Positions 498 through 20,123 of a stretch of 64,000 bases of DNA are shown here, one piece after another. The stretch lies in sequence record OR532817.1; one strand, 5' to 3'. Each line of letters begins with the position of its first letter. The first letter of the stretch is position 1. A program made the translations under genes and the position numbers. The notes under the pieces are model-generated. The model saw only the letters and a list, made by a program, of their open reading frames with translations. It ran no database searches and was not told the origin of the DNA.

Positions 498-612
498 GAG
501 AATGATAATGATTCTCATTTGAATTGGATGAGAACGATTCTCATTTACTATTGCAAATGATAATAGATTGCATTTACGAATGGTTCTCATTCGCAGATGA
601 TAATGATTCTTA
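498..612. promoter_or_regulatory. Cluster of five Fur-box-like 7-1-7 repeats
   Basis: TGATAATGATTCTCA 503-517, TGAGAACGATTCTCA 529-543, TGATAATGATTCTTA 598-612; weaker copies 558-572 and 575-589; compare Fur consensus TGATAAT-n-ATTATCA. Confidence 0.7.
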
Positions 613-747
613 TTCAAAATTGATTTTTCCGATTTTTTCCATTAGTCCCCCTTCAGCGTAGGGTTAATTTTTCCCCTGCCGAATCGGTTTTATATTTTCA
701 AAATCTGGATTAATCATATCAGTACTAACCCAGATAAACAATACCCC

Positions 748-762
748 TTTACAAATCTTTAC
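748..762. promoter_or_regulatory. CpxR-type tandem box
   Basis: TTTAC-AAATC-TTTAC, the reverse complement of GTAAA-N5-GTAAA. Confidence 0.55.
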
Positions 763-788
763 AAAAAGATTCTAAATGCGAATACAAA

Positions 789-803
789 TGATAATGATTC
801 TCA
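789..803. promoter_or_regulatory. Fur-box-like site
   Basis: TGATAATGATTCTCA. Confidence 0.7.
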
Positions 804-811
804 TTTACAGT

Positions 812-860
812 ACTGAATACTTTTCCCCACGCTCTGGCGTCTCCGGTTCCTCCCGTCTAT
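812..860 (-). ncRNA. Two-hairpin sRNA-like element, copy 1
   Basis: Minus-strand TTGACT (889-894)/TATAAT (867-872); core hairpin ACGC-CAGA-GCGT then GGGG; no ORF. Confidence 0.5.
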
Positions 861-962
861 ATAAACATTATACAGTACTGAAATATTAAGTCAATACTAT
901 TTTTTCAAAAAGATTAAAATAAAATACTTGCAATCCTGATATTATTATATTATAATGTTTAC

Positions 963-1010
963 AGTACTGAGAAAGTGCTTTTGCCCGCTAGGGTGCGGGG
1001 GAGTATGCGT
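963..1010 (+). ncRNA. Two-hairpin sRNA-like element, copy 2
   Basis: TTGCAA (928)-17-TATAAT (951); AGTACT-GAGAA-AGTGCT; GCCC-GCTA-GGGT-GCGG. Confidence 0.55.
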
Positions 1011-1014
1011 TAAA

Positions 1015-1029
1015 TGAGAATGATAATCA
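1015..1029. promoter_or_regulatory. Fur-box-like site between convergent sRNA copies 2 and 3
   Basis: TGAGAATGATAATCA. Confidence 0.7.
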
Positions 1030-1039
1030 TTTACAGTAC

Positions 1040-1080
1040 TGGACGGATTTTCCCACCCTCGGGGGTCTCTTTTTGTCTAT
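1040..1080 (-). ncRNA. Two-hairpin sRNA-like element, copy 3
   Basis: Minus-strand TTGATA (1109-1114)/TATAAT (1087-1092); ACCC-CCGA-GGGT-GGGA. Confidence 0.5.
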
Positions 1081-1119
1081 GTGGTAATTATACAGTACTG
1101 GAATACTATATCAAGTCTC

Positions 1120-1134
1120 TTTACAAATCTTTAC
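1120..1134. promoter_or_regulatory. CpxR-type tandem box
   Basis: TTTACAAATCTTTAC. Confidence 0.55.
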
Positions 1135-1228
1135 AATCCACCCGGGGAGATTTATCTTTACAATAAAAGTACTTGCATAATTCTTTCAGTACTGCTATTA
1201 TATATTCATACCAAACAGGAGAACTACC

Positions 1229-1399
1229 ATGAAATACGCGTACTCTTATTTTATTGTAAACGGTGAACGTTTGACCATCGGCCAGGCAGCGGTAAAGCAT
1301 GAAATCATTTGCGATGATCTGGCAAAGATGCTACCAGGTGAAACGCAAGAGTTTTACAAGGGCTTTCAGAAAGTCACTGTAACACGTTGTGAAGATTGA
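1229..1399 (+). CDS. Hypothetical protein (56 aa, not in ORF track)
   Basis: Promoter at 1173, RBS CAGGAG, MKYAYSYFIVNGE...RCED*. Confidence 0.75.
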   Translation: MKYAYSYFIVNGERLTIGQAAVKHEIICDDLAKMLPGETQEFYKGFQKVTVTRCED

Positions 1400-1464
1400 T
1401 CCAGTATTAGGGGTAGGAATACCCCTAAAACGTCCTGTAACGCATTATAAGAGGTTTTTATAAT

Positions 1465-1692
1465 ATGGCTATAGAAGTTAACGCTGGGGATATAAAGGCG
1501 GCTGTACTGCGTACCCTGAAAGCATACGGCAGAAAGCTGAATGATCGCAACGTTCCCTATTATTTCCTTGCTGCTACTCATAAAATGGCAATCGCTGAGG
1601 CTCGCGGGTGGCTGAATGATCGCAGTACTGTAAAGAGTACCAGAACAAGAAACGCAATTGAGCGATGGATAAAAGAATTAAATCATTTCTAA
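1465..1692 (+). CDS. Hypothetical protein
   Basis: 75-aa ORF with plausible composition; weak RBS. Confidence 0.6.
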   Translation: MAIEVNAGDIKAAVLRTLKAYGRKLNDRNVPYYFLAATHKMAIAEARGWLNDRSTVKSTRTRNAIERWIKELNHF

Positions 1693-1764
1693 TAGTTCAG
1701 TTATGGAATCAGTACTGATTCCCTGTTTAGTACTGAAATTATAAGGGGAGTTAATTAATTCCCC

Positions 1765-1779
1765 TTTACAAATCTTTAC
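1765..1779. promoter_or_regulatory. CpxR-type tandem box
   Basis: TTTACAAATCTTTAC, 10 bp upstream of the -35 of sRNA copy 4. Confidence 0.6.
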
Positions 1780-1823
1780 AAAAGAATGGTTGACATAGTA
1801 TCCCAGTACTGGTATTATGTATT

Positions 1824-1872
1824 CATAGACAGAACAAGTCTTTGGCCCACCGGGTGCGGAGGAGTATCTATT
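1824..1872 (+). ncRNA. Two-hairpin sRNA-like element, copy 4
   Basis: TTGACA (1790)-17-TATTAT; AGAC-AGAACAA-GTCT; GCCC-ACC-GGGT-GCGGAGGAGTATCTAT. Confidence 0.65.
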
Positions 1873-1880
1873 AGATTGAA

Positions 1881-1901
1881 TGATAATGATAATGATTCTC
1901 A
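1881..1901. promoter_or_regulatory. Overlapping Fur-box-like sites between convergent sRNA copies 4 and 5
   Basis: TGATAATGATAATGATTCTCA. Confidence 0.75.
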
Positions 1902-1914
1902 TTTACTGTACTGA

Positions 1915-1965
1915 ATATATTTCCGCACCCTTTTGGGCTTTTCGATTACTTTCTACTTGTTAATA
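1915..1965 (-). ncRNA. Two-hairpin sRNA-like element, copy 5
   Basis: Minus-strand TTGCAT...TATACT; GCCC-AAAA-GGGT-GCGGAA. Confidence 0.5.
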
Positions 1966-1998
1966 AGTATACCATAATCAGTACTGAATGCAATGGTC

Positions 1999-2013
1999 TT
2001 TACAAATCTTTAC
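1999..2013. promoter_or_regulatory. CpxR-type tandem box
   Basis: TTTACAAATCTTTAC. Confidence 0.55.
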
Positions 2014-2110
2014 AAAAGAAAATAATTATAAAAAGTACTGAAAAAGTACTTGACGCAATAATGTAGTACTGGCATAATACATCCATACCAAACAGAACGG
2101 AGTAACTAAA

Positions 2111-2398
2111 ATGTTTAATGAAAATGATCATATTGTTAAAGAGTTTTCTTTCAGTAAGCCTATCCATTTAGAAAACGGTGAAACGCTGGACAATAAATTT
2201 TATGGTAGTATTATTAAGCGTTATACATCGCGGAGTAGTACTGGAATTTTGTGGGAAGTGAATAAACAGTACAATGGTAATTCGCTGGTTGTCAATGAGT
2301 GGGAAAGTTATGCAGTAGCTGAAATGGATTTTTCTAACTTTATTACTGAATCTTTGAACGATGATATCTTTTACAAGTTCACAGCGGAAAGGGTTTAA
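2111..2398 (+). CDS. Hypothetical protein
   Basis: Own promoter at 2049, RBS GGAG. Confidence 0.8.
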   Translation: MFNENDHIVKEFSFSKPIHLENGETLDNKFYGSIIKRYTSRSSTGILWEVNKQYNGNSLVVNEWESYAVAEMDFSNFITESLNDDIFYKFTAERV

Positions 2399-2518
2399 AA
2401 AGTTTTAAAGAGTACTTGACAACATAAACCAGTACTGTATAATGTATTGCATAGAAAGGAGATTCCATTATTCTGGAATCTCCGATAAAACAAACTAATC
2501 GGTGAAGGAGTAATTGCC

Positions 2519-3127
2519 ATGAATGTTATCGATACCATCTATTCTAAATCTTTTATCGAACTGAATGAAGAGCAGAAAGAAAAAGCAATTGATATTATGC
2601 GGGAAATTGAAAATCAGGACACTACCCCTTATTGGTCAATTGATCTTGTTAACCAGATGAAAGAAAAATTAGTACAATATGGAATTGATGATTCTGAAAT
2701 TTTGTGGTCTGGATTTTGTTCACAGGGAGACGGTGCAAGTATCAGCACTGAATCAATTAATACTGAGATGTTTTTACGTAAGGTAAAAGCGTGGTCTAAA
2801 TTTAAAGGCTTGCGTAAATTCATCTCCGAAGAAACTATTTCTTTGAGTGTTCGCCGGGTGAGCCATCATTACTATCATGAATATTGTGTTAGTGGTAATG
2901 TTGAAATTGCTTATTGTGAAGATGTTACCGCCAAACAAGAACAATTAGTGGACGATTTGCAAACTTTGATCACAAATACTATTCGTGATTTGTCTCGTGA
3001 ATTGTATAAAGATTTAGGGAATGAAAACGATTATCATAACAGCGATGAAGCATTGATTGAATTGATTAATGCAAATGATTATCATTTCAAAGTTAACAGT
3101 ACTGGCGACGTGTTAGGACTTGCATAA
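2519..3127 (+). CDS. Hypothetical protein, WSGFxSQGDGA motif family
   Basis: Promoter 2416, leader hairpin 2458-2483, RBS AAGGAG; motif recalled from phage/plasmid hypotheticals. Confidence 0.8.
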   Translation: MNVIDTIYSKSFIELNEEQKEKAIDIMREIENQDTTPYWSIDLVNQMKEKLVQYGIDDSEILWSGFCSQGDGASISTESINTEMFLRKVKAWSKFKGLRKFISEETISLSVRRVSHHYYHEYCVSGNVEIAYCEDVTAKQEQLVDDLQTLITNTIRDLSRELYKDLGNENDYHNSDEALIELINANDYHFKVNSTGDVLGLA

Positions 3128-3215
3128 TGACTAAATTATATATTCGTTTCTGTTTTGCCTGGTACTTGTATAATCTGCAAAATGGTTATCCAGGGAAATA
3201 GTACTGATATACTGT

Positions 3216-3247
3216 AAAACGTCCTGTAAACGATTATGGGACGTTTT
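3216..3247. repeat. AAAACGTCC-N14-GGACGTTTT inverted repeat
   Basis: Near-identical copy at 11407-11438; partial copies 1427-1457 and 16062-16092. Confidence 0.85.
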
Positions 3248-3318
3248 AAGGAATATTAGTACAATGTTAGTACTGAATGATTTAAACGCCTTACAGTGGC
3301 TTACAGGAGATTATATCA

Positions 3319-3531
3319 ATGGCTAAATGTACTATTTGTAATAAAGAAATTATTCTTTCCCCTAGTGCAGAGGAACGAGCTAAAAAGTACGGCGGAAAAG
3401 CCAGCGACTACACAAAACTCTTTACTACTCATGCGACTTGTGCTGTTAATAAAAGTTCAAATGCCAACATTGAATTAATGCGTAAAATCAATAATGATTT
3501 TATTAATTCCTGTAAAAAAGTACTTGCATAA
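3319..3531 (+). CDS. Small putative Zn-binding protein
   Basis: CxxC (CTIC) and HxxC (HATC); RBS CAGGAG. Confidence 0.75.
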   Translation: MAKCTICNKEIILSPSAEERAKKYGGKASDYTKLFTTHATCAVNKSSNANIELMRKINNDFINSCKKVLA

Positions 3532-3610
3532 AGTTTTCAGTACTGGCATAATACATCTATACCAAACAAAAAGGGAATCAGTGCTGATTCCAAGATAAGG
3601 AGTAACTGAA

Positions 3611-3925
3611 ATGAGTACTAAAGAACTGAATGTAACTACCAACACTTATAAGATGTTAGGCGGTCGGATGTTGCGTGATTATTACGCAATTGAAATCGAA
3701 GAACGCGAATTACCCGAAGATAAACACTATTGGGAAAGTGGTGTGAGTCCTCTGTTACGGGTAACAACGTCTAAGCATGTTTTCTTTACTTCTCGCATTC
3801 ATGTTAATAAGCGTGTCGAATTGACTTTCTCGTTTAGTGGAAGCTATAAAGATTATGAGATATTAAATGATCATATCGTTATCAGCAAATTTATTCAAAT
3901 GTATGGTGCGGATTCTTTACTTTAA
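3611..3925 (+). CDS. Hypothetical protein
   Basis: Promoter 3524, leader hairpin, RBS AAGGAG. Confidence 0.8.
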   Translation: MSTKELNVTTNTYKMLGGRMLRDYYAIEIEERELPEDKHYWESGVSPLLRVTTSKHVFFTSRIHVNKRVELTFSFSGSYKDYEILNDHIVISKFIQMYGADSLL

Positions 3926-4011
3926 GTACTTGACAATTCGATCCAGTACTGTATAATGTATTACACCAAAGGGGATACATAGTGTATCCCTGATATAAAG
4001 GAGTAGCGACT

Positions 4012-4371
4012 ATGCGAGCTTTTAACGTTTATAAGAATGACAAGAAAATTGACGTTGTTTATTATTCCGAAGTAATGACGGCAAAAGAAGTAACCGATTT
4101 GCTGAATAGCCGTGGTGAATACAACGGCGAAGTAAAAGCATTTCGGTCATTGAATAGTGCGAATATTCGCACAGTACTGAAAAATGCTAAAACTGTTTTA
4201 TTCAATGATGACGAATATTTTAATAAAGATGTTACGGGTATTAAAAACCTGGAAGATCTGAAAAGCCTTATTGGTATTAAAGGCAACGTATACAAAGTGG
4301 GGGAAGTCGGATCTCGCCATGAATATAAATTAGCCAATAGTGATTATAAATTTTCAATCCTGGTAATGTAA
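4012..4371 (+). CDS. Hypothetical protein
   Basis: Promoter 3930, leader hairpin, RBS AAGGAG. Confidence 0.8.
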   Translation: MRAFNVYKNDKKIDVVYYSEVMTAKEVTDLLNSRGEYNGEVKAFRSLNSANIRTVLKNAKTVLFNDDEYFNKDVTGIKNLEDLKSLIGIKGNVYKVGEVGSRHEYKLANSDYKFSILVM

Positions 4372-4372
4372 T

Positions 4373-4576
4373 ATGAAAGTTTATATTTTGGAAGTGGAAG
4401 AATGTAATTCATATTCTTACAGTGGTACACTATCACGCGTGGAGGCTGTATTTGCCAGTGAGAAAGAAGCCCACGCCGCCGGGATTTAAAAAGTAAAAGA
4501 AGGCTATGAAGGTTATAGCGTCGATGCTTATGATATTCAGGGCGATCTTTCAGTACTGTTAAAGGAATTAAAATAA
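4373..4576 (+). pseudogene. Small ORF interrupted by an in-frame TAA
   Basis: MKVYILEV...HAAGI*(4487-4489)KVKEGYEG...LKELK*; frame continues to a stop overlapping the next ATG. Confidence 0.65.
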
Positions 4577-4791
4577 TGGAATATGAATTAATATATCATA
4601 CTCGATTATATGTTATTTTCTTTGAAATAACGTTATGGGGAGTAAAGGCAACGATTTATAATAAAGACGTTGCCGACGATCAAGAATGGATCGTTGTTGC
4701 AGAAGATAAAACGCCTCATGATTCGTTAAGTACTGATTTTAAATTATGCCGTGAATTATTAAAGAGTATAAGAAAAGATAATAATATATAA
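4576..4791 (+). CDS. Hypothetical protein
   Basis: TAATG coupling, RBS AAGGA. Confidence 0.7.
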   Translation: MEYELIYHTRLYVIFFEITLWGVKATIYNKDVADDQEWIVVAEDKTPHDSLSTDFKLCRELLKSIRKDNNI

Positions 4792-4794
4792 AAC

Positions 4795-4822
4795 AAAGGG
4801 GATCAATCGATCCCCTTTTTGT
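4795..4822. terminator. Bidirectional intrinsic terminator
   Basis: AAAGGGGATC-AATC-GATCCCCTTTTTT. Confidence 0.85.
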
Positions 4823-4842
4823 TTCAGTACTGAATTAATAAT

Positions 4843-4905
4843 AGATACACTACGGCACCCTATGGGTCAGTGCCTTGTGTCCGGCTTATGTGGTTATTAT
4901 GCCAG
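4843..4905 (-). ncRNA. Two-hairpin sRNA-like element, copy 6
   Basis: Minus-strand TTGACT-17-CATAAT; GCC-GGACACAA-GGC; ACCC-ATA-GGGT-GCCGTAGTGTATCTAT; points into the 4795 terminator. Confidence 0.65.
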
Positions 4906-4934
4906 TACTGCGAACATAAGTCAATAGATGATTT

Positions 4935-4949
4935 GTAAAGAAGTGTAAA
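4935..4949. promoter_or_regulatory. CpxR-type tandem box
   Basis: GTAAA-GAAGT-GTAAA, 11 bp upstream of the minus-strand -35 of copy 6. Confidence 0.6.
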
Positions 4950-5152
4950 TGCACAGGAAGCGTTTTAAGGCGTTAATCTGTTGCTGGTGGCTGATAGTAC
5001 AGAGAAGTGTTTTAGATTGATTGTAGGCCGTTGTAGGCGTTTATAGATAGTAAAGTACTGATAATGTTTAATGATCCTGGTATGTGCAAATTATTTTAAT
5101 TTTTTTCGTATTGGGTATTGACGGATTATGTCAGTACTGGCATAATGTATCA

Positions 5153-5220
5153 CATAGAGCGACGGGCAAGACAAGTAGTCAACCTGTAAGACATACGAAA
5201 ACCAGGTGACGTTGCACTGA
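5153..5220 (+). ncRNA. Candidate three-way-junction small RNA
   Basis: TTGACG (5118)-17-CATAAT; stems GCGACG/CGTTGC, GAC/GTC, ACCTG/CAGGT; no ORF. Confidence 0.45.
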
Positions 5221-5286
5221 TTCAGTACTGAATAATACATAACATCTAAATGTTGACAGTACTAAAAAATGTAGTATAATGATTAA

Positions 5287-5460
5287 CAGAAAGAAGCAAT
5301 CCAGTAAGCATGGATTAGTGATAAACGTAGGCCGGAATCACGAAAAACTTTCAAGGAAATACCCTTGTATAAAAAGGGAAGCGTTAAGCGTAGAACGTAA
5401 ACGCGAAAATCCTAGCCTTGAACTGAAAAAGTAAACAAGGCAATTACAGAAAAAAGATTT
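5287..5460 (+). ncRNA. Candidate multi-hairpin A-rich RNA or long leader
   Basis: TTGACA (5253)/TATAAT (5275); stems AATCCA/TGGATT, GTGAT/ATCAC, CAAGG/CCTTG, CCTTG/CAAGG; no + strand ORF. Confidence 0.35.
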
Positions 5461-5552
5461 AAAAAAGTAGTTGACAAGTACTAACGAGAATGAGATAATC
5501 TCTCTCGTTGAAACAAACAAACAATCTTAATCAAAACTTAAAGGTGAATAAA

Positions 5553-6053
5553 ATGGCTAAACTGAATTCTGTTGTTGTTGCTCTGATCGCTGGTGATATC
5601 GCTGCTCTGAATGCTTCTTTCGCGTCGGTATCGATGGAAGATATGAAAACTGTTCGTAACAACTTTAACGATTTTTACTCTAAATTCAAAGCTGCAAATG
5701 AAGCGGCGGAAGCGGCGGCAAAAGAGCGTAAAGCACAGATCGAAACCGAAACGAAAGAACTGGTAGACGCCCTGGTAACTGCTGGCCTGGATCTGGAAAT
5801 GGCCGCCGAAGTCGCCAGCCAGAAAATGGCGGTGAAATATCCCGAACTGGCTCCGAAGTCGGGAACTGGTAAAACCTGGTCGTTTGAAACCGTATTCGTT
5901 AACGTTGACGGTGAAAAACTGGAAATTGGCACCAAAGGCAACAAAGGCAGTATGAAAGCACTGGCGGCGGCACGCGAAGCAATTGCCGCTGGCAAATACA
6001 AAGATCGTGCTGAATGGATCGCCGCTCACGCCTGGACTGAAACCGAAGCGTAA
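5553..6053 (+). CDS. H-NS-like protein (putative)
   Basis: N-terminal coiled-coil pattern resembles H-NS (SMEDMKT...EAAEAAAKERKAQI...LVTAGLDLE vs TLETLEE...AAAAEVEERTRKL...LIADGIDPN); GKTWS vs H-NS TKTWT; strongly biased codons; promoter 5471; RBS AAGGTG. Confidence 0.5.
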   Translation: MAKLNSVVVALIAGDIAALNASFASVSMEDMKTVRNNFNDFYSKFKAANEAAEAAAKERKAQIETETKELVDALVTAGLDLEMAAEVASQKMAVKYPELAPKSGTGKTWSFETVFVNVDGEKLEIGTKGNKGSMKALAAAREAIAAGKYKDRAEWIAAHAWTETEA

Positions 6054-6075
6054 TAATTCAGTACTGTAATAATTA

Positions 6076-6105
6076 GCCTCCTGTAATTAGGAGGCTTTTT
6101 ATTTT
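6076..6105 (+). terminator. Intrinsic terminator
   Basis: GCCTCCT-GTAATT-AGGAGGC-TTTTTATTTT. Confidence 0.9.
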
Positions 6106-6189
6106 GTTCAAAAAAATATTTTAATTTATTTTTTGAACGGACTTAAAAAATCGGATATAATAATAAAGGGTGTTAATTACAGAGACCCC

Positions 6190-6300
6190 CATAGTGTTCG
6201 CTACGCTCACATAATGATCTTACTCGTTGCACTCGTAAGATCATTATCCAATCGGCCTTTGGCTATTTCTTTTTGATTTCCTACGGAAACCAAACGAAAC
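6190..6300. repeat. Serial hairpin array
   Basis: GTG-TTCGCTACGCT-CAC; ATAATGATCTTAC-TCGTTGCACTC-GTAAGATCATTAT; TTTGATTTC-CTACG-GAAACCAAA. Confidence 0.6.
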
Positions 6301-6669
6301 CACCAGCAAAGGCAGATCCCATTATTTGATTTAGTTAGTACTGCAATGAATTAGTTTAATCGCACTACAAAGCAATCAATCCCTTTTGTAATAGCTCATA
6401 GAACGCAATAAGACGCGTTTAAATGACTTCCCTATGTAATGCCATTCCTTTTTAATAAGTCCTCTTAAAACGCGTTACAGTTCGTTATACGGCGTTTAAT
6501 AATACTCATCATTTCTTTTTCAAAAAGTACTTGCATTAATGATCCAGTACTGCAATAATGTACTCACTGAAACGCAGTAAGCGAAGTAAGTAAATGCAAA
6601 TAAGTACTTGACAAAGTGTTGTAGTACTGGCATAATGAATACATCAAAACGATTAAGGAGAAACACCAA

Positions 6670-14040: not shown

Positions 14041-14043
14041 ACT

Positions 14044-14312: not shown

Positions 14313-14400
14313 TTTATGTTGGTCTGAATCATTAATTTTCTTGACAATTGGTTTAGTACTGGATATAATAGCCGCCATTGAATACATGAGGATTTTAAAA

Positions 14401-14667
14401 ATGGCCTATCATACACCACATAGACACTTCATTGATAAACGCGGTATGGCTTTTAAAGCAATGAGTGACAATCGTAACACACAAATGTACTTTAAAGATA
14501 TGACGTTAGAAGAAGCAATTGAAGCCGTAAGGAATGATCGTAAGCTTTCCAAGAAAGTTGCATCAGTACTTAATGCTTTTTGGTTTGAACGTACTACCAA
14601 CAAAGAATACAAAGAAAAGATGATTGCACTTGGTAAAGTAGTACGAGAAGAAAAATTATATCTTTAA
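14401..14667 (+). CDS. Hypothetical protein
   Basis: Start moved to 14401 (RBS GAGGA, own promoter). Confidence 0.75.
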   Translation: MAYHTPHRHFIDKRGMAFKAMSDNRNTQMYFKDMTLEEAIEAVRNDRKLSKKVASVLNAFWFERTTNKEYKEKMIALGKVVREEKLYL

Positions 14668-14730
14668 GTACTTGACTATGTGATTCAGTACTGCTATTAT
14701 ATATTCATACCAATTAAGGAGATTGACCAA

Positions 14731-14838
14731 ATGAAACAAGCAAAATTTAATTCAGAAATTAAAGCAGCAAAAGCACACAAAGTACAGTTAGCAGTACTGG
14801 TTATTGTATCAATCTTTTTGCTGTGCAACATCGGCTAA
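14731..14838 (+). CDS. Small membrane protein (35 aa)
   Basis: Promoter 14672, RBS AAGGAG, hydrophobic C-terminus. Confidence 0.65.
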   Translation: MKQAKFNSEIKAAKAHKVQLAVLVIVSIFLLCNIG

Positions 14839-14918
14839 AATAATTATTACAGTACTATTGACAACACGTGATAGTACTGGTATAATTACTTTACCAAATC
14901 AAAAAGGAGTAACCAAAA

Positions 14919-15194
14919 ATGCGGATTAAACTTACCAGTGATGAGATTCATTCAGTACTTACTACCAATATGCAGGACTGGAAAAAGTACGCTGATATCG
15001 AAGAAGTCCAGGAACTCAATGATGATTTGAGTGTAGATGAAATTATCACTATTTGCTCATCTCAATTCTTTGATGATATCAATGATGAAGAGCAAGATGT
15101 ATTTGATATCATGGATAAACATTTTATTGCGTATGATGTTTTTCCGTACACTCGCCAGGCTTATATTCTTATTCACAACATTTATAACAAATAA
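14919..15194 (+). CDS. Acidic hypothetical protein
   Basis: Promoter, RBS AAGGAG; D/E-rich. Confidence 0.8.
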   Translation: MRIKLTSDEIHSVLTTNMQDWKKYADIEEVQELNDDLSVDEIITICSSQFFDDINDEEQDVFDIMDKHFIAYDVFPYTRQAYILIHNIYNK

Positions 15195-15206
15195 GGAATA
15201 ATAATC

Positions 15207-15572
15207 ATGGAAAAAGAATTTAAAATCAAATACAATATCAGTACTGATGGCGGTTTTGAAGTTCCAGAAGAAGATCAAGAACGCCTTAATGATGTTATTA
15301 TGATTGACATTTCAAATAAAATCATTCAAGGCTACCGCGAAGGTGAATTGTGTGAATCGTTGATGGATCAATTCGATGAAGTGGAAACGTTTTATCGTGG
15401 CTGGTGGAGTATCGAAGAAGTTCACAAAGTACACGAATACCGCGTATTCTGGATTAACGGCGTTAATGATATCGAAGATATCATTGTAAAAGAAAGTAGT
15501 GAATCCGCCGCCATTCAGTACTTTAAAGATCACTACCCAAACAAACGTTATCACCATTTAGAAAAAATTTAA
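15207..15572 (+). CDS. Hypothetical protein
   Basis: RBS AAGGA. Confidence 0.8.
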   Translation: MEKEFKIKYNISTDGGFEVPEEDQERLNDVIMIDISNKIIQGYREGELCESLMDQFDEVETFYRGWWSIEEVHKVHEYRVFWINGVNDIEDIIVKESSESAAIQYFKDHYPNKRYHHLEKI

Positions 15573-15659
15573 AAAGTACTTGACACCTAATATCAGTACT
15601 GATATATTAATACGCATAGGGGCAAACAACTTGCCCCACCAAACAAAAGGAACTACCAA

Positions 15660-16016
15660 ATGATTACTAAATTCTACGCTACTCGTGAACTGGCTCGGAT
15701 CGTCGCTCGTGAAGAAGGTGAAACCTTCAAAGATATGGGTAAAGATTCCCCTGCTGGTCAACGCTGGGCAGTACTGTTCCGCGAGGTCAAAGACCTGGTA
15801 GAAAACGCTAAAGCCGTTGAAATGAACGTTCCCACCAAAGAAGATAAAGATCTGACTGATGCCCTCGCCGCCGCATTCTCCGCGATGGATAAAGCCGCTG
15901 CGGTAGTACTGAAAGTGCCGGAATTCGTAACCCGCAAAGTGCATTCAGTACTACAAAATAAATTCAACGGTAAACAGGTTCAGGTGTTTACTAAACGTAA
16001 AATTCCGGTCATGTAA
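15660..16016 (+). CDS. Hypothetical protein (ATRxxAR...RWAV motif)
   Basis: Promoter 15580, leader hairpin, biased codons. Confidence 0.8.
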   Translation: MITKFYATRELARIVAREEGETFKDMGKDSPAGQRWAVLFREVKDLVENAKAVEMNVPTKEDKDLTDALAAAFSAMDKAAAVVLKVPEFVTRKVHSVLQNKFNGKQVQVFTKRKIPVM

Positions 16017-16094
16017 AATCTGACTATTACAGTACTAACAAAGGGGCTTCAATGCCCCTTTAAACGTCCTGTAAACCATTCTAAGAGGTTTTGC

Positions 16095-16343
16095 ATGAAA
16101 AAGGTACAACTACACAAAGGAGTAATGAAAGTTCATTATAATGCCCCGCAACGCATTATAGATAGAGCCATTGAACTAGCCAATCAATATCTAGCTGGTG
16201 GATTAACTCCCAGGAAGTTAAGCAACGGGAAGTTATATGTAATCAACGTTGATACTAATAATCGTATAGTAATCAAAGGTGAAAGCATATCACTGTATGA
16301 ACATCAACAGTATAACAAGAAAGTAAAAAATATTAGTAGATAA
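16095..16343 (+). CDS. ParE/RelE-like toxin-fold protein (putative)
   Basis: PRKL...VINV...RIVI...LYEHQQYN resembles the PRRL/RWRLL/LMSHE.YN pattern; probable start 16125 (RBS AAGGAG). Confidence 0.45.
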   Translation: MKKVQLHKGVMKVHYNAPQRIIDRAIELANQYLAGGLTPRKLSNGKLYVINVDTNNRIVIKGESISLYEHQQYNKKVKNISR

Positions 16344-16422
16344 GTGTTGACAACTGATTTCAGTACTACCATAATGTATACATACAAGGCAATACCACCT
16401 AATAACATAGGAGTAACTGAAA

Positions 16423-16845
16423 ATGAAAAAATCCACTAAAATTATCTTAGGTGTATTTGTTGTTCCGGCAGTAGCCTTTTTTACTTGTGCTATGATTTTT
16501 GGTGATGCTTCTCGGGTTGCCGCAAAAATCGAAAAAGAAAAACAAGTCCAGGTTGAAGTTAAGAAAGAAGAAAAGAAAAATTATAACACTGTATGGGAAG
16601 CAATTTGCCATACCAGTAATGGTAAAAGGATCTCCATCCTTACAGCGATGAATAATGGAAAATCAATCGTCGGAAATGAATATATGGAAGTTACTTCCAG
16701 TACTGGTAAAGAATTTGTAATGACGAACTATAATAACAATAATGTTGCAATTGTTACACAGGATTTTAAAGGCAATGCAGTACTGGAATATCATACGGAA
16801 TATGAAGTAATATTTGCAAAATGCACGTTTGAATGGGGTGCATAA
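16423..16845 (+). CDS. N-terminally membrane-anchored protein
   Basis: Basic start then IILGVFVVPAVAFFTCAMIF; promoter, RBS. Confidence 0.75.
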   Translation: MKKSTKIILGVFVVPAVAFFTCAMIFGDASRVAAKIEKEKQVQVEVKKEEKKNYNTVWEAICHTSNGKRISILTAMNNGKSIVGNEYMEVTSSTGKEFVMTNYNNNNVAIVTQDFKGNAVLEYHTEYEVIFAKCTFEWGA

Positions 16846-16902
16846 AAATAAACAAAAAATCAAAAAAGGGGTTGACATATGTCAGCCCCTTTGCTATTAT
16901 TA

Positions 16903-16950
16903 ATATCAAGAAAACAAGCTAACCCACAGGGTGCATAAATGTATCTATAG
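16903..16950 (+). ncRNA. Two-hairpin sRNA-like element, copy 12
   Basis: TTGACA (16872); AAAACAA; ACCC-ACA-GGGT-GCATAAATGTATCTATA; hairpin 1 weak. Confidence 0.6.
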
Positions 16951-17025
16951 TTTATTAAAGAATTTTAGTACTTGACAACGTAGTACATCAGTACTAAAAT
17001 ATCTACATACAAAGGAGATTACCAA

Positions 17026-17610
17026 ATGAACAAACATCTTAAAGTACTGAATAAATGTAAATCCAATACCGAAATGTTACTGTACTGTTACAAAAATTTA
17101 ATTAAACTCGGTAAAGGTTCATCCCGCACGGTATTTTTGTTAACAAAAAATAAAGTACTGAAAGTTGCTCATAACCATATTGGCAACCAACAGAATACGG
17201 CGGAAATCACTGCCTGGCTGTATGTTGATTATGATCGCTATTATAATAAACGTTTTTTCGCTAAAGTGTTCCCTGATATGTCGCATTTTAAAGATGTATA
17301 CATAGTACAGGAGTACTGCGACAATATCAGTACTAAAGAAGCGAAGCCATACATCGAACATTACTTGACACCTCGCACTATTGAAAATGAGCGTGCTAAA
17401 CGCTTCCACACGGCGTTAAGAGATGTAGACAATACCCTTAACTATAAAACGCTGGTGGACTTAAACATGGGCAATATAGGCCGTTCTGTAAGGGGTGCAA
17501 TCAAACTACGTGACTATGGATTATCTGAACATATTGCTGAACAGTACCGAGAAGCCCGCTTCCAATACCAGAAGCTCAAAAGTATTAGTAAAATAAGTAT
17601 TGATTTATAA
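17026..17610 (+). CDS. Ser/Thr protein kinase (phage type)
   Basis: LGKGSSRTV Gly-loop, VLK lysine, helix-C E, DLNMGN catalytic loop, DYG. Confidence 0.8.
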   Translation: MNKHLKVLNKCKSNTEMLLYCYKNLIKLGKGSSRTVFLLTKNKVLKVAHNHIGNQQNTAEITAWLYVDYDRYYNKRFFAKVFPDMSHFKDVYIVQEYCDNISTKEAKPYIEHYLTPRTIENERAKRFHTALRDVDNTLNYKTLVDLNMGNIGRSVRGAIKLRDYGLSEHIAEQYREARFQYQKLKSISKISIDL

Positions 17611-17677
17611 TTTCAGTACTGGTATAGTACTTTCACAGGGGAGATAATCTCCCCCAAATCACAAAGGAGATTTTACC

Positions 17678-18040
17678 ATGAGTACTAAACCATTCGTTAC
17701 TACCCGTTCAAATCTCACCGAAATCTATGTACACGGTGGGTATGAGGAAACGTATGTCACTGGTATTATGGTAGAATTCCATCAGGGTTATCGGTTTATG
17801 TTGGTAGATTCAGAAATCTATCATACCCAACAAGATAAACATGGTTATGTCAATAAGTACTCCACCGATGAAGTACTGAAACGCCTGGATAACAAAATTA
17901 AACAAATTCAAAAACATCTTGACAACGGCGGAAAACTTAATCATTTACTTTGGGATAGCTTAGATCCCTGCTACGGTTCGGATGCATATGGTAAAAGCCG
18001 TGACACTGCAATGAAAGTACTTAAAGATTATTTCTTTTAA
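17678..18040 (+). CDS. Hypothetical protein
   Basis: Promoter, hairpin, RBS AAGGAG. Confidence 0.8.
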   Translation: MSTKPFVTTRSNLTEIYVHGGYEETYVTGIMVEFHQGYRFMLVDSEIYHTQQDKHGYVNKYSTDEVLKRLDNKIKQIQKHLDNGGKLNHLLWDSLDPCYGSDAYGKSRDTAMKVLKDYFF

Positions 18041-18121
18041 GTATTGACAAGCAATTCCAGTACTGTATAATATATTTCACAAGGGGAACATACCGTTCCC
18101 CGATTCAAGGAGATTAACCAA

Positions 18122-18304
18122 ATGAATAAATTCACAGTATTCGAAACAATCGCAGCAAACGGTGCTCCGATGTACTATGCTGTCAAAGGTGATACAGTAC
18201 TGGTATCCGGCAACGGTTGTCAATCATTTAAACCTTCTAACGTTTCCCCGTATTATGTCAGAACTAATATGGCGTATAGTCATATGCAAAAAATTACTCA
18301 ATAA
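18122..18304 (+). CDS. Hypothetical protein
   Basis: Promoter, hairpin, RBS AAGGAG. Confidence 0.8.
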   Translation: MNKFTVFETIAANGAPMYYAVKGDTVLVSGNGCQSFKPSNVSPYYVRTNMAYSHMQKITQ

Positions 18305-18386
18305 CCTATTGACATAGGTTATCAGTACTGGCATAATGTATTTCAAGGAGGTAATAACACCTCCTACCTTCAAGGAGTAGTTGACT

Positions 18387-18623
18387 ATGAATACTAAAGA
18401 AATGCTTTGTGAGTTCGCCAGTAACAATCTTGGCAACGCCGCTTTCATTGATGGTTTTAATTACGTAGCAACTCGTGATCAAGAAGGTAAAGTATTCGTT
18501 AAAGATCGTATGGGCTTTTCTATCCAGGTTCAATCCGGTACTGCAAGCCATATCGACGGCATGAATGTATGGGCTGCTACTATCCCCGGTGATGGAACAT
18601 ATCATTTCCGTATCGTAAAATAA
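18387..18623 (+). CDS. Hypothetical protein
   Basis: Promoter, hairpin, RBS AAGGAG. Confidence 0.8.
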   Translation: MNTKEMLCEFASNNLGNAAFIDGFNYVATRDQEGKVFVKDRMGFSIQVQSGTASHIDGMNVWAATIPGDGTYHFRIVK

Positions 18624-18722
18624 TTTAAAAAGTACTGGACAATACAATCCAGTACTGTATAATGTTTTGCATACACAAGAGATTCCAGTACTGGAATCTC
18701 TAATCTAAAGGAGAATACCAAA

Positions 18723-19004
18723 ATGATTAACGGCACTCTGATTAACTATGCAAAACGCCGTGATGTAGAAATAGAAGTACTGAAAGCAGGCGAAGTTGAC
18801 GACGACGCCCAGGTATGGTTCTACACCGCAGACAATGATTGTGAACCAGTACTGATGTATCTGATTAATAATGATGGTTCTCTTACTTATCGTAGCAAAC
18901 TGATGAAGTCCCTGGAAGATATGCCAGCACATATCAATAATAAAGAAGTGCTGAAACGCGTAATCTGCTACATCTCAGACCAGCACAAAGCGGATATGAT
19001 GTAA
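18723..19004 (+). CDS. Hypothetical protein
   Basis: Promoter, 24-bp palindromic leader, RBS AAGGAG. Confidence 0.8.
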   Translation: MINGTLINYAKRRDVEIEVLKAGEVDDDAQVWFYTADNDCEPVLMYLINNDGSLTYRSKLMKSLEDMPAHINNKEVLKRVICYISDQHKADMM

Positions 19005-19054
19005 TCTTTACAAATATGGGGGTTGACTAATGTCAGCCCTATTGGTATTATATA

Positions 19055-19105
19055 TTCAATCCAGCGAACTGGTCTAACCCTCAAGGGTGCCGAGATGTAT
19101 CTATA
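19055..19105 (+). ncRNA. Two-hairpin sRNA-like element, copy 13
   Basis: TTGACT (19023); CCAG-CGAA-CTGG; ACCC-TCAA-GGGT-GCCGAGATGTATCTATA. Confidence 0.65.
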
Positions 19106-19200
19106 ATTTAATGATTTGAAGTACTGAAAAATAATTATAAAAAGTACTTGCTAGACGTGAATTCTTTTAAGAATTCACTTGTATTTGTGATTCAGTACTG
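19085..19200 (+). repeat. 116-bp near-identical direct repeat, copy B
   Basis: Matches 8781-8896. Confidence 0.9.
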
Positions 19201-19285
19201 CCATAATATATCCATACAAGGGAAACATAGTGTTTCCCGATAATCCACAGCAATAGTGCTGGTGGATGAACCAGGAGTAATAACC

Positions 19286-19582
19286 ATGCAAGACAAATCA
19301 ATTCACGTTCAAGTAGTTTCAAGCCGTGGCTATGACGATGTAGTACTGGATATCATGGTTAAAGATCTGCGGGACTATGCAATCATTGCACGTCATATCA
19401 TGGTTAACTCCATTTGTATCAGTACTGGTGCCGATATGGAAGAAAACCGCTTACATATAGAAGAACATCTATACAAAGCACGCATGAATGACAGCAGTGT
19501 ATTCATCATTGAAGGTGCCGAGGGTAAAGAGTATACTGTATACCTTCGCCAGTACCAGGAAGTAGAAAAAGAAGAAGATTAA
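19286..19582 (+). CDS. Hypothetical protein
   Basis: Start moved to 19286 (RBS CAGGAG). Confidence 0.8.
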   Translation: MQDKSIHVQVVSSRGYDDVVLDIMVKDLRDYAIIARHIMVNSICISTGADMEENRLHIEEHLYKARMNDSSVFIIEGAEGKEYTVYLRQYQEVEKEED

Positions 19583-19673
19583 TTTATAAAAAGTACTTGC
19601 TTTAATAGTTCAGTACTGTATACTGTTTATCAAGGGGAAGCAATAGTGCCTCCCCACTCATAGGAGATACACC

Positions 19674-20072
19674 ATGTTTACTATCACTTCTCGCCAGGAT
19701 GTTCTGTACGTTGCTAAAACTTTTGGTCTGGAAGCACTCGATCATATCATTCGCAACAGTACAATGAATGCGGATGCAAATGGGATTATCATTGATACTC
19801 GGGCATGGGCCGCCAATGAAGTCATTGCCATCGAGCATGTTAACGATGGTAACAATGTCTATGAAGTGGATGCATGTTTCAATGCTGTTAATGTAGCAGG
19901 TATGTATATCACTGGTATTGATGATATCACTATCATCCGCTCCGGTATGGGTAACTTCTCCATGCCTTTACGTTCAGCAATGGAAAGAAAAGAGATCAGT
20001 ACAGAACAATGTGCAAATATAATCAATGAGATTACCGCACGTAATGAAGCTGCTGCTATCCTTTACCCGTAG
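19674..20072 (+). CDS. Hypothetical protein
   Basis: Promoter, hairpin, RBS TAGGAG. Confidence 0.8.
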   Translation: MFTITSRQDVLYVAKTFGLEALDHIIRNSTMNADANGIIIDTRAWAANEVIAIEHVNDGNNVYEVDACFNAVNVAGMYITGIDDITIIRSGMGNFSMPLRSAMERKEISTEQCANIINEITARNEAAAILYP

Positions 20073-20091
20073 TAGTTCAGTACAGTACTGT

Positions 20092-20123
20092 AAGCCCATA
20101 GGATAAACCCTGTGGGCTTTTTC
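20092..20123 (+). terminator. Intrinsic terminator closing the early region
   Basis: AAGCCCATAGG-ATAAAC-CCTGTGGGCTT-TTTC. Confidence 0.85.

Follow-up and report, generated by a model that had tools for sequence, protein, structure and literature searches.

What is the function of a 20-kb block of phage DNA that is dense in small non-coding elements? The block lies at the start of the window, by which we mean the whole 64-kb stretch that was analyzed. A sequence-only reading had described it as an island set apart by its non-coding elements, had guessed that it was early DNA from a genome end, and had given it a host-sensing decoy role. The island is real, and it coincides with a direct terminal repeat (DTR), so the guess about early DNA at a genome end was sound. 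The host-sensing decoy role is mostly unproven.

A terminal repeat of a jumbo phage

The window is identical (100%) to nucleotides 124001-188000 of Klebsiella phage RCIP0023, which is classified as a jumbo phage of the genus Alcyoneusvirus (RaK2 group). In its relative Muenster, nucleotides 1-20030 are annotated, in the published record, as a PhageTerm terminal repeat of ~20 kb, with which the flagged 0.5-20.1 kb of the window coincides. The right edge of the DTR lies near 20350, as placed by homology to Muenster nucleotide 20030, and the left edge lies ~300 nt before position 1 of the window. Repeat arrays adjoin both edges: (ATTCAGTACT)n at the left and ATTCTGTAC repeats at the right. GC content is 35-39% in the DTR versus 26-30% downstream in the window, and the coding fraction is 63% versus 93%. 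The DTR holds about 44 small genes, mostly in separate cassettes.

We favor, with moderate confidence, the explanation that this ~20-kb DTR of an Alcyoneusvirus jumbo phage acts as an immediate-early takeover module that is transcribed by the host's RNA polymerase, and that it combines cassettes like the promoter-early stem-loops (PeSLs) of T4 with a new RNA family. It would have three layers: early gene cassettes, an RNA module that is restricted to the DTR, and sites for interaction with the host (Fur-like boxes and Chi sites). Features are listed in Table 1. We infer the early transcription starts in the RCIP0023 window, as well as the RNA ends and the protein-DNA and protein-RNA contacts.

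Table 1. Features of the terminal repeat, in window coordinates.
Feature	Position	Strand	Details
DTR	1..20350	.	homology to Muenster
Fur-box-like palindromes in an array (about 5; GAGAATGATAATGATTCTC and variants)	498..615	.	conserved in six Alcyoneusvirus genomes
Conserved hairpin-containing block (..CCGCG..GGGG..TTTCCCC..AAATCTGGA..)	620..720	.	between array and first RNA units
TTTACAAATCTTTAC, reverse complement of CpxR consensus GTAAA-N5-GTAAA	748..762	+	further exact copies at 1120, 1765, 1999, 10127; one-mismatch copy at 8691
Leftward unit	780..899	-	promoter 899-867 (TTGACT-16-TATAAT with CAGTACTG; 11/12 match); degenerate module; Fur-like box 787-808
Convergent pair 1	928..1119	.	plus promoter 928-956; minus promoter 1119-1087; central Fur-like box 1013-1034
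AGTACT-decorated sigma-70 promoters (n=32)	1168..19624	+	promoter inventory with coordinates
Long-hairpin small RNA	1785..1946	+	promoter 1785-1818; module 1821-1873; Fur-like boxes 1879-1906 at apex, then GGGCUUUU
Discrete small RNA gene	4793..4929	-	promoter 4929-4896; module 4880-4839; bidirectional terminator 4795-4822 (canonical); TTTAC-N5-TTTAC at 4949-4935; fold z=-3.4
TTTAC-N5-TTTAC variant	4935..4949	-	both pentamers kept, spacer different
Chi (GCTGGTGG)	4983, 7170, 12255, 13890, 15400, 16194, 17451, 19258	+	span 4983..19265
H-NS-like protein, N-terminal oligomerisation domain	5553..6053	+	Pfam PF22470, 27.1 bits vs cutoff 24.5
Chi (GCTGGTGG), single minus-strand site	6300	-	
Short module unit	8691..8802	+	TTGACAAATCTTTAC box; -35 inside terminator hairpin (GGGGTTGAC..CCCCTTTT); module 8748-8802
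Short module unit	10127..10234	+	exact TTTACAAATCTTTAC 11 bp upstream of -35; module 10184-10234
Short module unit	10560..10645	+	terminator-embedded promoter; module 10595-10645
Discrete small RNA gene	12136..12275	-	promoter; module 12237-12186; bidirectional terminator 12140-12165; fold z=-3.1
Short module unit	14225..14312	+	module 14260-14312 overlaps annotated start of CDS 14236-14667
ParE-like toxin-domain protein	16095..16343	+	Pfam PF24732, E=2.4e-10
Short module unit	16868..16950	+	upstream of kinase-like gene; module 16899-16950
Protein-kinase-like early protein	17026..17610	+	Pfam Pkinase E=3e-4, below curated cutoff
Short module unit	19005..19106	+	half TTTAC box; module 19054-19106
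Strong terminator, end of early block	20090..20125	+	GCCCATAGG..CCTGTGGGCTTTTT; also an annotated terminator in Muenster

Early promoters and the AGTACT motif

Besides the 32 plus-strand promoters with AGTACT boxes, we found three credible ones on the minus strand. All of these lie in 867-19624, inside the DTR, and the inventory found no promoters of this type at 20-64 kb of the window. AGTAC is fused to the -35 element in 16-17 of the 32 plus-strand promoters, which puts two AGTACT exactly 20 bp apart (AGTAC-TTGACA ... CAGTACTG-(0-1 nt)-TATAAT). The window contains 18 pairs at exactly this spacing, all within 1168-19612. They cover both promoter hexamers, which bears out the paired sites that were reported earlier. 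These promoters form a family with a phage-specific extension: one AGTACT runs directly into the -35, and the other (CAGTACTG) abuts the -10 at a fixed 20 bp. If the -10 is weaker (CATAAT or TATTAT), the second box is 1 nt further away and its TG could form an extended -10.

There is about one promoter per gene in the early cassettes, and 27 of the 32 plus-strand promoters are at most 106 nt upstream of a start codon. The promoter repeats were grouped into families D1-D12. Each cassette combines a sigma-70 promoter close to consensus with a 5' hairpin and a ribosome-binding site that is strong.

The closest known elements are the PeSLs of T4-like phages, whose definition includes a near-perfect sigma-70 consensus (PMC4122927). 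Like the cassettes here, PeSLs are terminator/promoter composites, found in plastic regions on either side of many small early genes with poor conservation (PMC2839356, PMC4122927). Our cassettes share the composite structure (five promoters have their -35 embedded in a terminator hairpin) and the near-consensus hexamers. In both cases conserved cassettes plausibly drive gene shuffling; here, early gene content varies among close relatives. Unlike PeSLs as described, our cassettes take up a terminal repeat of 20 kb, they have two AGTACT palindromes at fixed positions, and in many of them a conserved, structured RNA module comes next. Recombination probably spread the cassettes, as in T4-like phages.

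AGTACT itself is found throughout the genome. It occurs 260 times in the window (14 expected). Inside coding sequence its density is 2.5-3.8 per kb, in all three frames and across the whole window, and the 347.5-kb genome of a relative has 2.7 per kb, which rules out confinement to the first 20 kb. There are ~940 sites per genome, mostly inside genes, and no octamer is more over-represented genome-wide than CAGTACTG (81-fold). Sites outside the DTR are no more conserved than control hexamers. We read AGTACT/CAGTACTG as a signature that marks whole genomes in this phage group and not, as had been suggested, as an operator dedicated to the early promoters. Of the elements that were said to co-occur only in the first 20 kb, the RNA family and the promoter pairs are restricted to the DTR genome-wide, but AGTACT is not.

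A family of structured RNAs

The small-RNA-like repeats of the sequence-only reading were confirmed, and a covariance model, covariation, and folding strengthen the case. The module repeats only in the DTR, both in the window and in one whole relative genome (every covariance-model match). There are 72 matches to the model, from at least seven jumbo-phage lineages, with 33 distinct P1 stem sequences. All four base pairs of P1 have compensatory double changes. Covariation in P1 is 0.394 versus 0.127 in shuffles (0 of 500 shuffles were as high as observed) and at most 0.064 in slid controls, although the alignment was fitted to the model, which favors the structure. Leaders are more stably folded than shuffles (p=3e-6), and the discrete RNA units have canonical terminators and fold z scores of -3.1 to -4.4. 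Convergent pair 1 consists of two modules as an imperfect inverted repeat (its plus-strand RNA folds into P1 and a long hairpin, followed by a U-tract), and it is 68-75% identical to segments of Asteriusvirus genomes that are about 1.1 kb from their left ends. Munch-like phages carry a counterpart, with 72% identity and about 0.95 kb in from the left end, of the long-hairpin RNA at 1785-1946 (covariance-model E=8e-10; fold -40.2 kcal/mol, z=-4.4). The module has no match in Rfam, and the small structured RNAs form a family that had not been described before.

The module has three parts: the P1 hairpin, in which the stem sequence is free to vary and the loop is rich in purines; the P2 hairpin (CCC-NNN-GGG); and a purine-rich box that is conserved and single-stranded. 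It would come in three forms: as discrete small RNAs of ~100 nt with a terminator at their end, as the 5' leader of a gene, and as convergent pairs whose RNA folds into a long hairpin. Covariation in P1, together with the conserved loops (GNGAAA or AGAUAA), suggests that this RNA hairpin binds a protein and does not serve only as a primer. We propose that the RNA is early and abundant, and that its partner is a conserved protein.

Another explanation is that the module acts on its own polymerase or transcript, as an antitermination site or a 5' stabilizer, and is not a trans-acting small RNA. Lambdoid nut (boxB) and HK022 put are promoter-proximal RNA elements, and the module always begins ~22 nt after a promoter. 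Its small P1 hairpin, purine-rich in the loop and free in the sequence of the stem, recalls boxB. Also, an obvious terminator is missing from most of the plus-strand short modules, for which "leader" may be a better term than "small RNA"; many directly follow a terminator-embedded promoter and precede a gene instead of a clear terminator. However, canonical terminators close several units after about 100 nt, and others form convergent pairs without a gene downstream; in either case an antiterminator would have nothing to read through. Unlike nut or put, the module lacks boxA and is present in many copies, some of them convergent or terminated after about 100 nt, and we identified no N-like protein. 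We consider the antitermination or stabilizer role to be very unlikely.

Fur-like boxes at the left end

Palindromes that resemble the Fur consensus cluster 0.8-2.2 kb from the left genome end. With up to three mismatches, GATAATGATAATCATTATC has six matches in the window (0.26 expected), all at 498-1906. The boxes that had been reported across the first 20 kb are statistically real, but they occur only within the first 2 kb; and instead of lying at the 3' ends of small RNAs, they are at the center of convergent RNA pairs, at roughly +50 to +70 relative to the inferred starts of transcription, with a separate array at 498-615. A site at +50 to +70 is not in the usual position for occluding a promoter.

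The boxes match 16-17 of the 19 consensus positions in three genera that infect different hosts. Phages of Salmonella/Klebsiella aerogenes and of Erwinia have such boxes in equivalent places, and arrays equivalent to 498-615 are present in Munch and Hallingskeid. In the whole genome of a relative, three of four matches are within 520 bp near the left end (about 1 per genome is expected by chance). The 19-mer is kept in three genera while the adjoining P1 stems diverge freely. E. coli phage fEgEco12 has no Fur-like boxes and has a different repeat array in the same slots.

As in the Fur operators of Enterobacterales, there is a 19-bp consensus and an array of overlapping hexamers (GAGAAT/GATAAT units). 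But these are predicted boxes in a phage genome, they lie within transcribed regions or in an array without promoters, and the relative that infects E. coli lacks them. We predict that the palindromes in the leftmost 2 kb are most likely bound by the host's Fur, which would make the leftmost units iron-responsive and/or titrate Fur during genome replication. Titration of Fur by multicopy Fur boxes is the basis of the FURTA assay. Fur control of the leftmost units is plausible. The different repeat in fEgEco12 fits a phage-encoded binder as well as Fur.

The left end could instead be a set of sites for a phage protein (a small terminase or an initiator) and/or T4-type R-loop origins that are primed by transcription, with a coincidental likeness to Fur boxes. 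The array, the hairpin block, the leftward promoter, and the convergent unit are retained in this order in four genera, 0.7-1.3 kb from the left end. Munch, Hallingskeid, and fEgEco12 have a hairpin block that can be recognized by eye and that keeps its relative position. A co-evolving phage protein would be expected to have a different array in fEgEco12, and repeat arrays abut both boundaries of the DTR. The module RNA is G-rich and AT-rich DNA follows it, as in R-loop origins, and the replication proteins of this phage group are T4-like (PMC5259590). On the other hand, agreement with the Fur consensus reaches 16-17 of 19 positions in three genera with different hosts; fENko-Kae01 has Fur-like palindromes far from the genome end (at 2342 and 7309); at least 10 modules per DTR are many for origins; and P1 seems to be more than a primer. 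Overall, we view this alternative as unlikely.

The TTTAC-N5-TTTAC box

This box matches the CpxR consensus at 10 of 10 specified positions, and the window has six exact copies (0.5 expected). However, five of the six are identical 15-mers, spacer included, so they are copies of one duplicated repeat, and there is no enrichment in the window if one mismatch is allowed (20 versus 14.9 expected). The box was said to lie 10-11 bp upstream of small-RNA promoters. This is true of the exact copies at 1765, 10127, and 4949(-) and of the one-mismatch copy at 8691, but the copies at 748, 1120, and 1999 lack this geometry. The box occupies the position of an UP element, where the paralogous module promoters have A-tracts. 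As for relatives, fEgEco12 has a single copy, which retains the 10-11 bp geometry at one promoter, in its orthologue of the 10127-10234 unit; the Munch-like phage has no copy, and the Hallingskeid stretch has just one, with no module next to it. These results weaken the CpxR reading. The box is most simply an upstream (UP-like) promoter element, and CpxR control is a weak prediction.

In the model that was first proposed, the first DNA to enter the cell would read envelope stress (via CpxR) and iron (via Fur), or sequester both regulators, and would make decoy RNAs until a phage protein that binds AGTACT pairs (TTCAGTACTGAA) shut the block off. Some of our results are as this model would have it: the CpxR match and its geometry at four promoters here and one in fEgEco12, the retention of both pentamers in the 4949(-) copy despite its different spacer, the conserved Fur-like boxes and the precedent for titration, and the spacing of the AGTACT pairs, which is two helical turns. 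Yet the TTTAC boxes are mostly one repeat and are absent from the Munch-like phage and away from any module in Hallingskeid, and with AGTACT mostly in genes throughout the genome, a repressor that uses it would lack specificity for the early block. This model is quite unlikely, in our estimation.

Takeover-type proteins and Chi sites

Returning to the takeover module, we counted the H-NS-like, ParE-like, and kinase-like proteins, which are of takeover type, in its favor. The gene for the H-NS-like protein is bordered by non-coding stretches of 0.6-0.8 kb and is annotated in Muenster as "putative DNA-binding protein". The kinase-like protein is common to all three genera compared, and its relatives are annotated as kinases.

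The pre-early (first-step-transfer) DNA of T5 and the host-takeover module of SPO1 are also long DTRs with many small takeover genes that are transcribed by the host's polymerase, and their strong early promoters also have a phage-specific extended consensus. They differ in that their proteins are unrelated to those described here, and we found no evidence of two-step DNA transfer in this phage. We know of no described counterpart in T5 or SPO1 for the RNA family, the Fur-like boxes, or the Chi array.

Nine of the 20 genomic Chi sites fall in the DTR, which is 6% of the genome, and there are none at 20-64 kb of the window. In phage and plasmid genomes such as P1, Chi is over-represented and orientation-biased, as it is here, and is expected to attenuate RecBCD on linear DNA. 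The array in RCIP0023 would similarly attenuate RecBCD that enters from the right end of linear DNA. Unlike in P1, the sites are confined to the terminal repeat. The DTRs of fEgEco12 and fENko-Kae01 have the same oriented clustering, so this arrangement of Chi, found in three genera, is a new observation.

The flagged region is, by homology, a long direct terminal repeat

The window is identical (100%) to nt 124001-188000 of Klebsiella phage RCIP0023 (OR532817.1), and its identity to RaK2, K64-1, Muenster, and KP13-7, all jumbo myoviruses of the genus Alcyoneusvirus, is 95-98%. Position 1 of the window corresponds to nt 311 of Muenster, and the two are collinear from there on. In Muenster, nt 1-20030 are a direct terminal repeat (DTR), as predicted by PhageTerm (sequence record and PMC8407769). 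By homology, the DTR of RCIP0023 should begin about 300 nt to the left of the window and end near position 20350. The sequence-only reading had described 498-20123 as an island that senses or decoys the host; with these bounds, the island essentially equals the DTR, so it is indeed a discrete region, homologous to and collinear with one that was shown to be terminally repeated by read-end analysis. (The RCIP0023 record was deposited circularly permuted.) Homologous DTRs of 20-21 kb are present in the E. coli phage fEgEco12 and in fENko-Kae01. A long DTR has been confirmed by restriction mapping for fEgEco12 and by read depth and PFGE for CBB.

The DTR has a higher GC content than the sequence downstream (35-39% vs. 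26-30%) and a lower coding density (63% vs. 93%), and all of the annotated genes are on the plus strand. Only about 7 of its 44 proteins are common to three genera, at 35-70% identity, and the gene lists vary among RCIP0023, RaK2, KP13-7, and Muenster. The products include a protein with an H-NS N-terminal domain, a ParE-like protein, and a kinase-like protein, which fit a role in host takeover. A tRNA scan gave no match.

The left boundary of the DTR is preceded, at 12-60 bp, by four AGTACT sites at 10-bp spacing. At the right boundary there are repeats of ATTCTGTAC(A/T)C (20395-20425 in the window and 20070-20140 in Muenster), and ..GATTGGACTATG..CCTTAGC is common to the right boundaries of three genera. 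The arrays that adjoin the two boundaries are candidate terminase or end-processing signals. The rest of the window (20400-64000) is organised in another way and forms a second block, with about 105 small genes of unknown function on the plus strand. It has the GC content and coding density given for the downstream sequence and no AGTACT-type promoters, and it ends at a gene for a T4-type RNA ligase 1.

Paired AGTACT sites mark a family of promoters

The palindrome AGTACT occurs 260 times in the window, vs. 14 expected. Eighteen pairs are spaced at exactly 20 bp, all within 1168-19612, and a promoter family is built on these pairs: AAAAGTAC-TTGACA ... CAGTACTG-(0-1 nt)-TATAAT. The plus strand has 32 promoters of this kind and the minus strand another 3 that are credible; they all fall within 867-19624, and 27 of them are at most 106 nt upstream of a start codon. 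An independent consensus scan of the first 2.3 kb agreed with this inventory. If the -10 is CATAAT or TATTAT, then the box is 1 nt farther away and its TG forms an extended -10. Across the whole genome of the relative OU509535, the DTR contains or adjoins 30 of 42 plus-strand promoter matches, as well as 22 of the 23 pairs that are spaced at exactly 20 bp, and promoters of this type are also found in the DTRs of fEgEco12 (Asteriusvirus), fENko-Kae01 (Munch-like), and the Erwinia phage Hallingskeid. The earlier claim therefore holds: the overlap of AGTACT pairs with promoters is restricted to the first 20 kb.

AGTACT alone is not an element of the early block. Within coding sequence it is found at 2.5-3.8 sites per kb across the whole window, in each of the three frames, and its density in a relative's genome of 347.5 kb is 2.7 per kb. 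Relative to base composition, no other octamer is as over-represented as CAGTACTG (246 sites vs. about 3 expected). This is an 81-fold excess, and outside the DTR it still reaches 64-fold. In its extended form, the motif reads approximately TTCAGTACTGAA. Comparing RCIP0023 to OU509535, we did not detect selection on the AGTACT sites outside the DTR (91 of 102 conserved vs. 87.7% for composition-matched hexamers, p = 0.39). Hexamer statistics from a maximal-order Markov model were uninformative because the sub-words are enriched as well.

A palindrome-binding protein could well span both promoter hexamers, with its sites two helical turns apart. This putative binder would meet about 940 further sites per genome as well, and it is probably important. 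We rejected a reading of AGTACT as the binding site of SlmA (GTGAGTACTCAC), which has G before and C after the core, because the flanking bases of AGTACT are the opposite: C precedes 48-54% of the sites and G follows 46-66% of them, and G before and C after the core are seen in at most 8%. We also rejected codon usage as the source of the enrichment, as the sites are in all frames and the count in frame 0 is far above a rough estimate from Ser-Thr codon pairs. We regard the genome-wide enrichment as real. In 5' leaders and intergenic DNA, AGTACT is often the apex of a longer perfect palindrome (such as GGAATCAGTACTGATTCC).

A structured RNA module that covaries

The DTR also contains a repeated RNA module which, according to repeat analysis and inspection, always starts about 22 nt past a sigma-70 promoter. 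The module consists of a hairpin (P1), a linker of 3-5 nt, a second hairpin (P2), UGC, a purine-rich stretch, and a conserved 3' box (UGUAUCUAU or UCCGUCY). The loop of P1 is purine-rich (AGAUAA, GNGAAA, or AGAACAA), and P2 is a nearly invariant CCC-NNN-GGG. MAFFT placed the P1 stems out of register, so we built a covariance model from 13 ungapped copies instead. At E of 0.01 or better, the model matched 72 copies in RCIP0023, OU509535, fEgEco12, 121Q, fENko-Kae01, Hallingskeid, GAP32, CBB, and uncultivated jumbo contigs. All nine copies in the window are within 1821-19106, and all eight copies in the complete genome OU509535 are inside the DTR.

The P1 pairs are retained through compensatory changes across lineages, as for a new RNA family. 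Each of the four P1 pairs has compensatory double changes (in 23-30 sequences per pair), with 90% of cells paired. The covariation score for P1, from an alignment that was fitted to the model, is 0.394, vs. 0.127 for shuffled data (0 of 500 shuffles reached it) and at most 0.064 for slid controls. A count that does not depend on the alignment gives 33 distinct P1 stems. P2 is invariant and hence uninformative for covariation. Leaders fold better than their shuffles do (p = 3e-6). In Rfam 15 there was no match at gathering thresholds (the best sub-threshold hits scored 20-24 bits vs. thresholds of 75-376). The core of the module is nearly invariant, which places it with the most constrained parts of the DTR.

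Module copies are arranged in three ways (see table). The discrete genes are predicted to yield RNAs of about 100 nt (fold z = -3.1 to -3.4). In the short units, the -35 is usually within the preceding terminator hairpin, so termination of upstream transcription and re-initiation use one element; the AGTACT-type promoter of the next gene follows within 40-60 nt. The convergent pairs are situated some 1 kb in from the left end in each genus examined, and their predicted transcripts comprise P1 and a long hairpin and then Us (for 1825-1946, -40.2 kcal/mol and z = -4.4).

Module units and associated elements (window coordinates)
Feature	Position	Strand	Remarks
Discrete module genes	4793-4929, 12136-12275	minus	bidirectional terminators at ends
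Short module units	8748, 10184, 10595, 14260, 16899, 19054	plus	
Promoters with -35 (TTGAC) in terminator hairpin	8713, 10560, 14225, 16868, 19018		hairpin GGGGTTGAC..GTCAGCCCCTTTT
Convergent module pair	928-1119		modules face each other
Convergent module pair	1785-1946		modules face each other; partner decayed
Three-codon mini-frames	8795-8806, 10638-10649, 14305-14316, 16943-16954, 19099-19110		last copy TAA, not TAG
Long palindromes with apical AGTACT	1705-1722, 7518-7537, 11845-11862, 18678-18699		

The short modules share a conserved mini-frame of three codons, NTG-TAT-CTA-TAG, 5 nt after GGGUG. The frame opens with a possible start codon in every copy, as the first base is A, G, or T. 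An annotated coding sequence (RCIP0023_00257, 14236-14667) overlaps a module and its promoter, as does Muenster gp034, and the 5' parts of both are probably over-called.

A 52-nt module query against E. coli genomes identified no pairing target, which is uninformative given the size of the database. An exact 14-mer scan of IMG/VR gave mostly chance matches; jumbo-phage contigs alone were confirmed by nhmmer or the covariance model, and the module was not confirmed in a 420-kb IMG/VR contig. We dropped mimicry of CRISPR repeats by P2 because the stem is too short.

TTTAC-N5-TTTAC boxes are more simply read as UP elements

CpxR boxes (TTTAC-N5-TTTAC) had been proposed to lie in a fixed position, 10-11 bp upstream of the module promoters. 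There are 6 exact copies of this box, vs. 0.5 expected. Five of them are the same 15-mer (TTTACAAATCTTTAC, with spacer AAATC; only the copy at 4949(-) has another spacer), so these five boxes are copies of one repeat. The CpxR consensus GTAAA-N5-GTAAA is not enriched if one mismatch is allowed. The distance of 10-11 bp from the -35 held at 1765, 10127, 4949(-), and, for a box with one mismatch, 8691, but not at 748, 1120, or 1999; other module promoters have A-tracts in the position of the box. Nor is the arrangement conserved in relatives: fEgEco12 has a single copy, with the same spacing at one orthologous unit, and the Munch-like phage lacks the box. A simpler reading is that TTTAC-N5-TTTAC, at about -45 to -60, would act as an UP element, and we consider the CpxR component of the island model to be weak. 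A stretch of Hallingskeid contains a lone TTTAC box with no adjoining module.

Fur-like boxes near the left end

With up to 3 mismatches, the 19-bp Fur consensus GATAATGATAATCATTATC has 6 matches in the window (vs. 0.26 expected), all within 498-1906. The phage's own unit, AATGATAATGATTCTCATT, has 15 matches (vs. 0.2 expected), and 11 of these are within the first 2 kb. The whole genome OU509535 has 4 matches to the Fur consensus, vs. about 1 per genome in shuffles, and 3 of the 4 are clustered in a 520-bp segment that lies 0.8-1.3 kb in from the left end. Some of the boxes form an array (498-615) with no promoter-like site over it. The others occupy the middle of the leftward unit and of the convergent units; counted from each predicted start, they are at about +50 to +70, at the apex of the long hairpin. 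Fur-like boxes thus do not overlap promoters here, as they would for repression by Fur: those in the units are downstream of the starts, and the array is without a promoter.

Munch and fENko-Kae01 have the array at about 700-800 and paired boxes at 1002/1089 and 7278/7357, and the design of array plus paired boxes is present in Hallingskeid too. In three genera, the 19-mer departs from the consensus at no more than 3 positions, beside P1 stems that vary freely, which argues for a sequence-specific binder and not RNA pairing alone. Two observations count against Fur as this binder. First, the position of the boxes is not the usual promoter-occluding one. Second, we found no Fur-like box in fEgEco12, which infects E. 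coli. Binding by Fur seems likely, although it is a prediction from sequence and we would give it about an even chance. If Fur does bind, the effect may be an iron-dependent roadblock, titration, or an architectural role. We searched the literature for Fur boxes in jumbo phages and found nothing relevant.

In fEgEco12, the slot that Fur-like boxes occupy in the Klebsiella, Salmonella, and Erwinia phages (here 720-920) instead holds about 15 GGATGG/GGACGG-CTA repeats, and a related motif is in the convergent unit (1290-1310). The complement of these repeats resembles the 3' box of the module (ATCCGTCC or ATCCGTCT).

Relation to known systems

Taken as a whole, the proposed host-sensing and decoy island stands in part: the observations behind it hold up in part, and of its components the Fur part is plausible, the CpxR part is weak, and the decoy RNAs and the shut-off protein are putative. 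The early regions in the terminal repeats of T5 and SPO1 are among the closest described systems to this DTR. So are the PeSL (promoter-early stem-loop) cassettes of T4-like phages, which combine promoters and terminators (PMC4122927). By the definition in PMC4122927, the DTR has PeSL-type elements: near-consensus sigma-70 early promoters with a stem-loop, repeated between small genes. Four features appear to be new, and our literature searches found no description of any of them: the AGTACT decoration, a DTR-restricted family of covarying RNAs, Fur-like boxes at fixed positions, and a DTR-confined array of Chi sites. Searches for CAGTACTG and for transcriptomes of RaK2-group phages also gave nothing relevant.

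A more speculative proposal, which we consider improbable, is that the DTR of the RaK2 group carries an RNA-based takeover layer, with a module that acts in trans, a form of it that is switched by Fur, and titration of Fur. The strongest early promoters would fire 10-15 copies of one module, and this RNA would be a trans-acting sponge, either for an Enterobacterales-conserved protein or for a phage protein that is conserved. Where copies converge at the far left, the long hairpin of the RNA would have a host Fur operator at its apex, and iron status would decide between an open, truncated form of the module and a closed, full-length one. The multiplying Fur boxes would titrate Fur, and iron uptake would be derepressed for the phage.

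RaK2-group jumbo phages are under development against Klebsiella, E. coli, and Salmonella, and about 80% of their genes are unannotated. Our analysis gives a regulatory map of the DTR, which is likely the immediate-early region. The consensus of the AGTACT-type promoters can be used to annotate early genes, and the covarying RNA family deserves to be entered in Rfam, with its partner worth searching for. If the predicted Fur operators are genuine, this virulent phage would be wired to the host's iron regulator, which is rare.

An oriented array of Chi sites

All 9 Chi sites (GCTGGTGG) in the window are within 4983-19258, 8 of them on the plus strand, and there are none in 20-64 kb. The DTR contains 9 of the 20 Chi sites in the genome OU509535, and the DTRs of fEgEco12 and fENko-Kae01 have 10 plus-strand and 2 minus-strand sites and 12 and 2 sites, respectively. 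Chi is thus biased in orientation as well as over-represented, with a genome-wide enrichment over base composition of about 15-fold. Sites in this orientation would act on RecBCD that enters the right end of the linear genome, and the array suggests a way in which a linear genome of 366 kb may keep its ends intact despite RecBCD. In fEgEco12 and Munch/fENko-Kae01, there is also an inverted pair of Chi sites (CCACCAGC..GCTGGTGG) about 480-590 bp from the left end.
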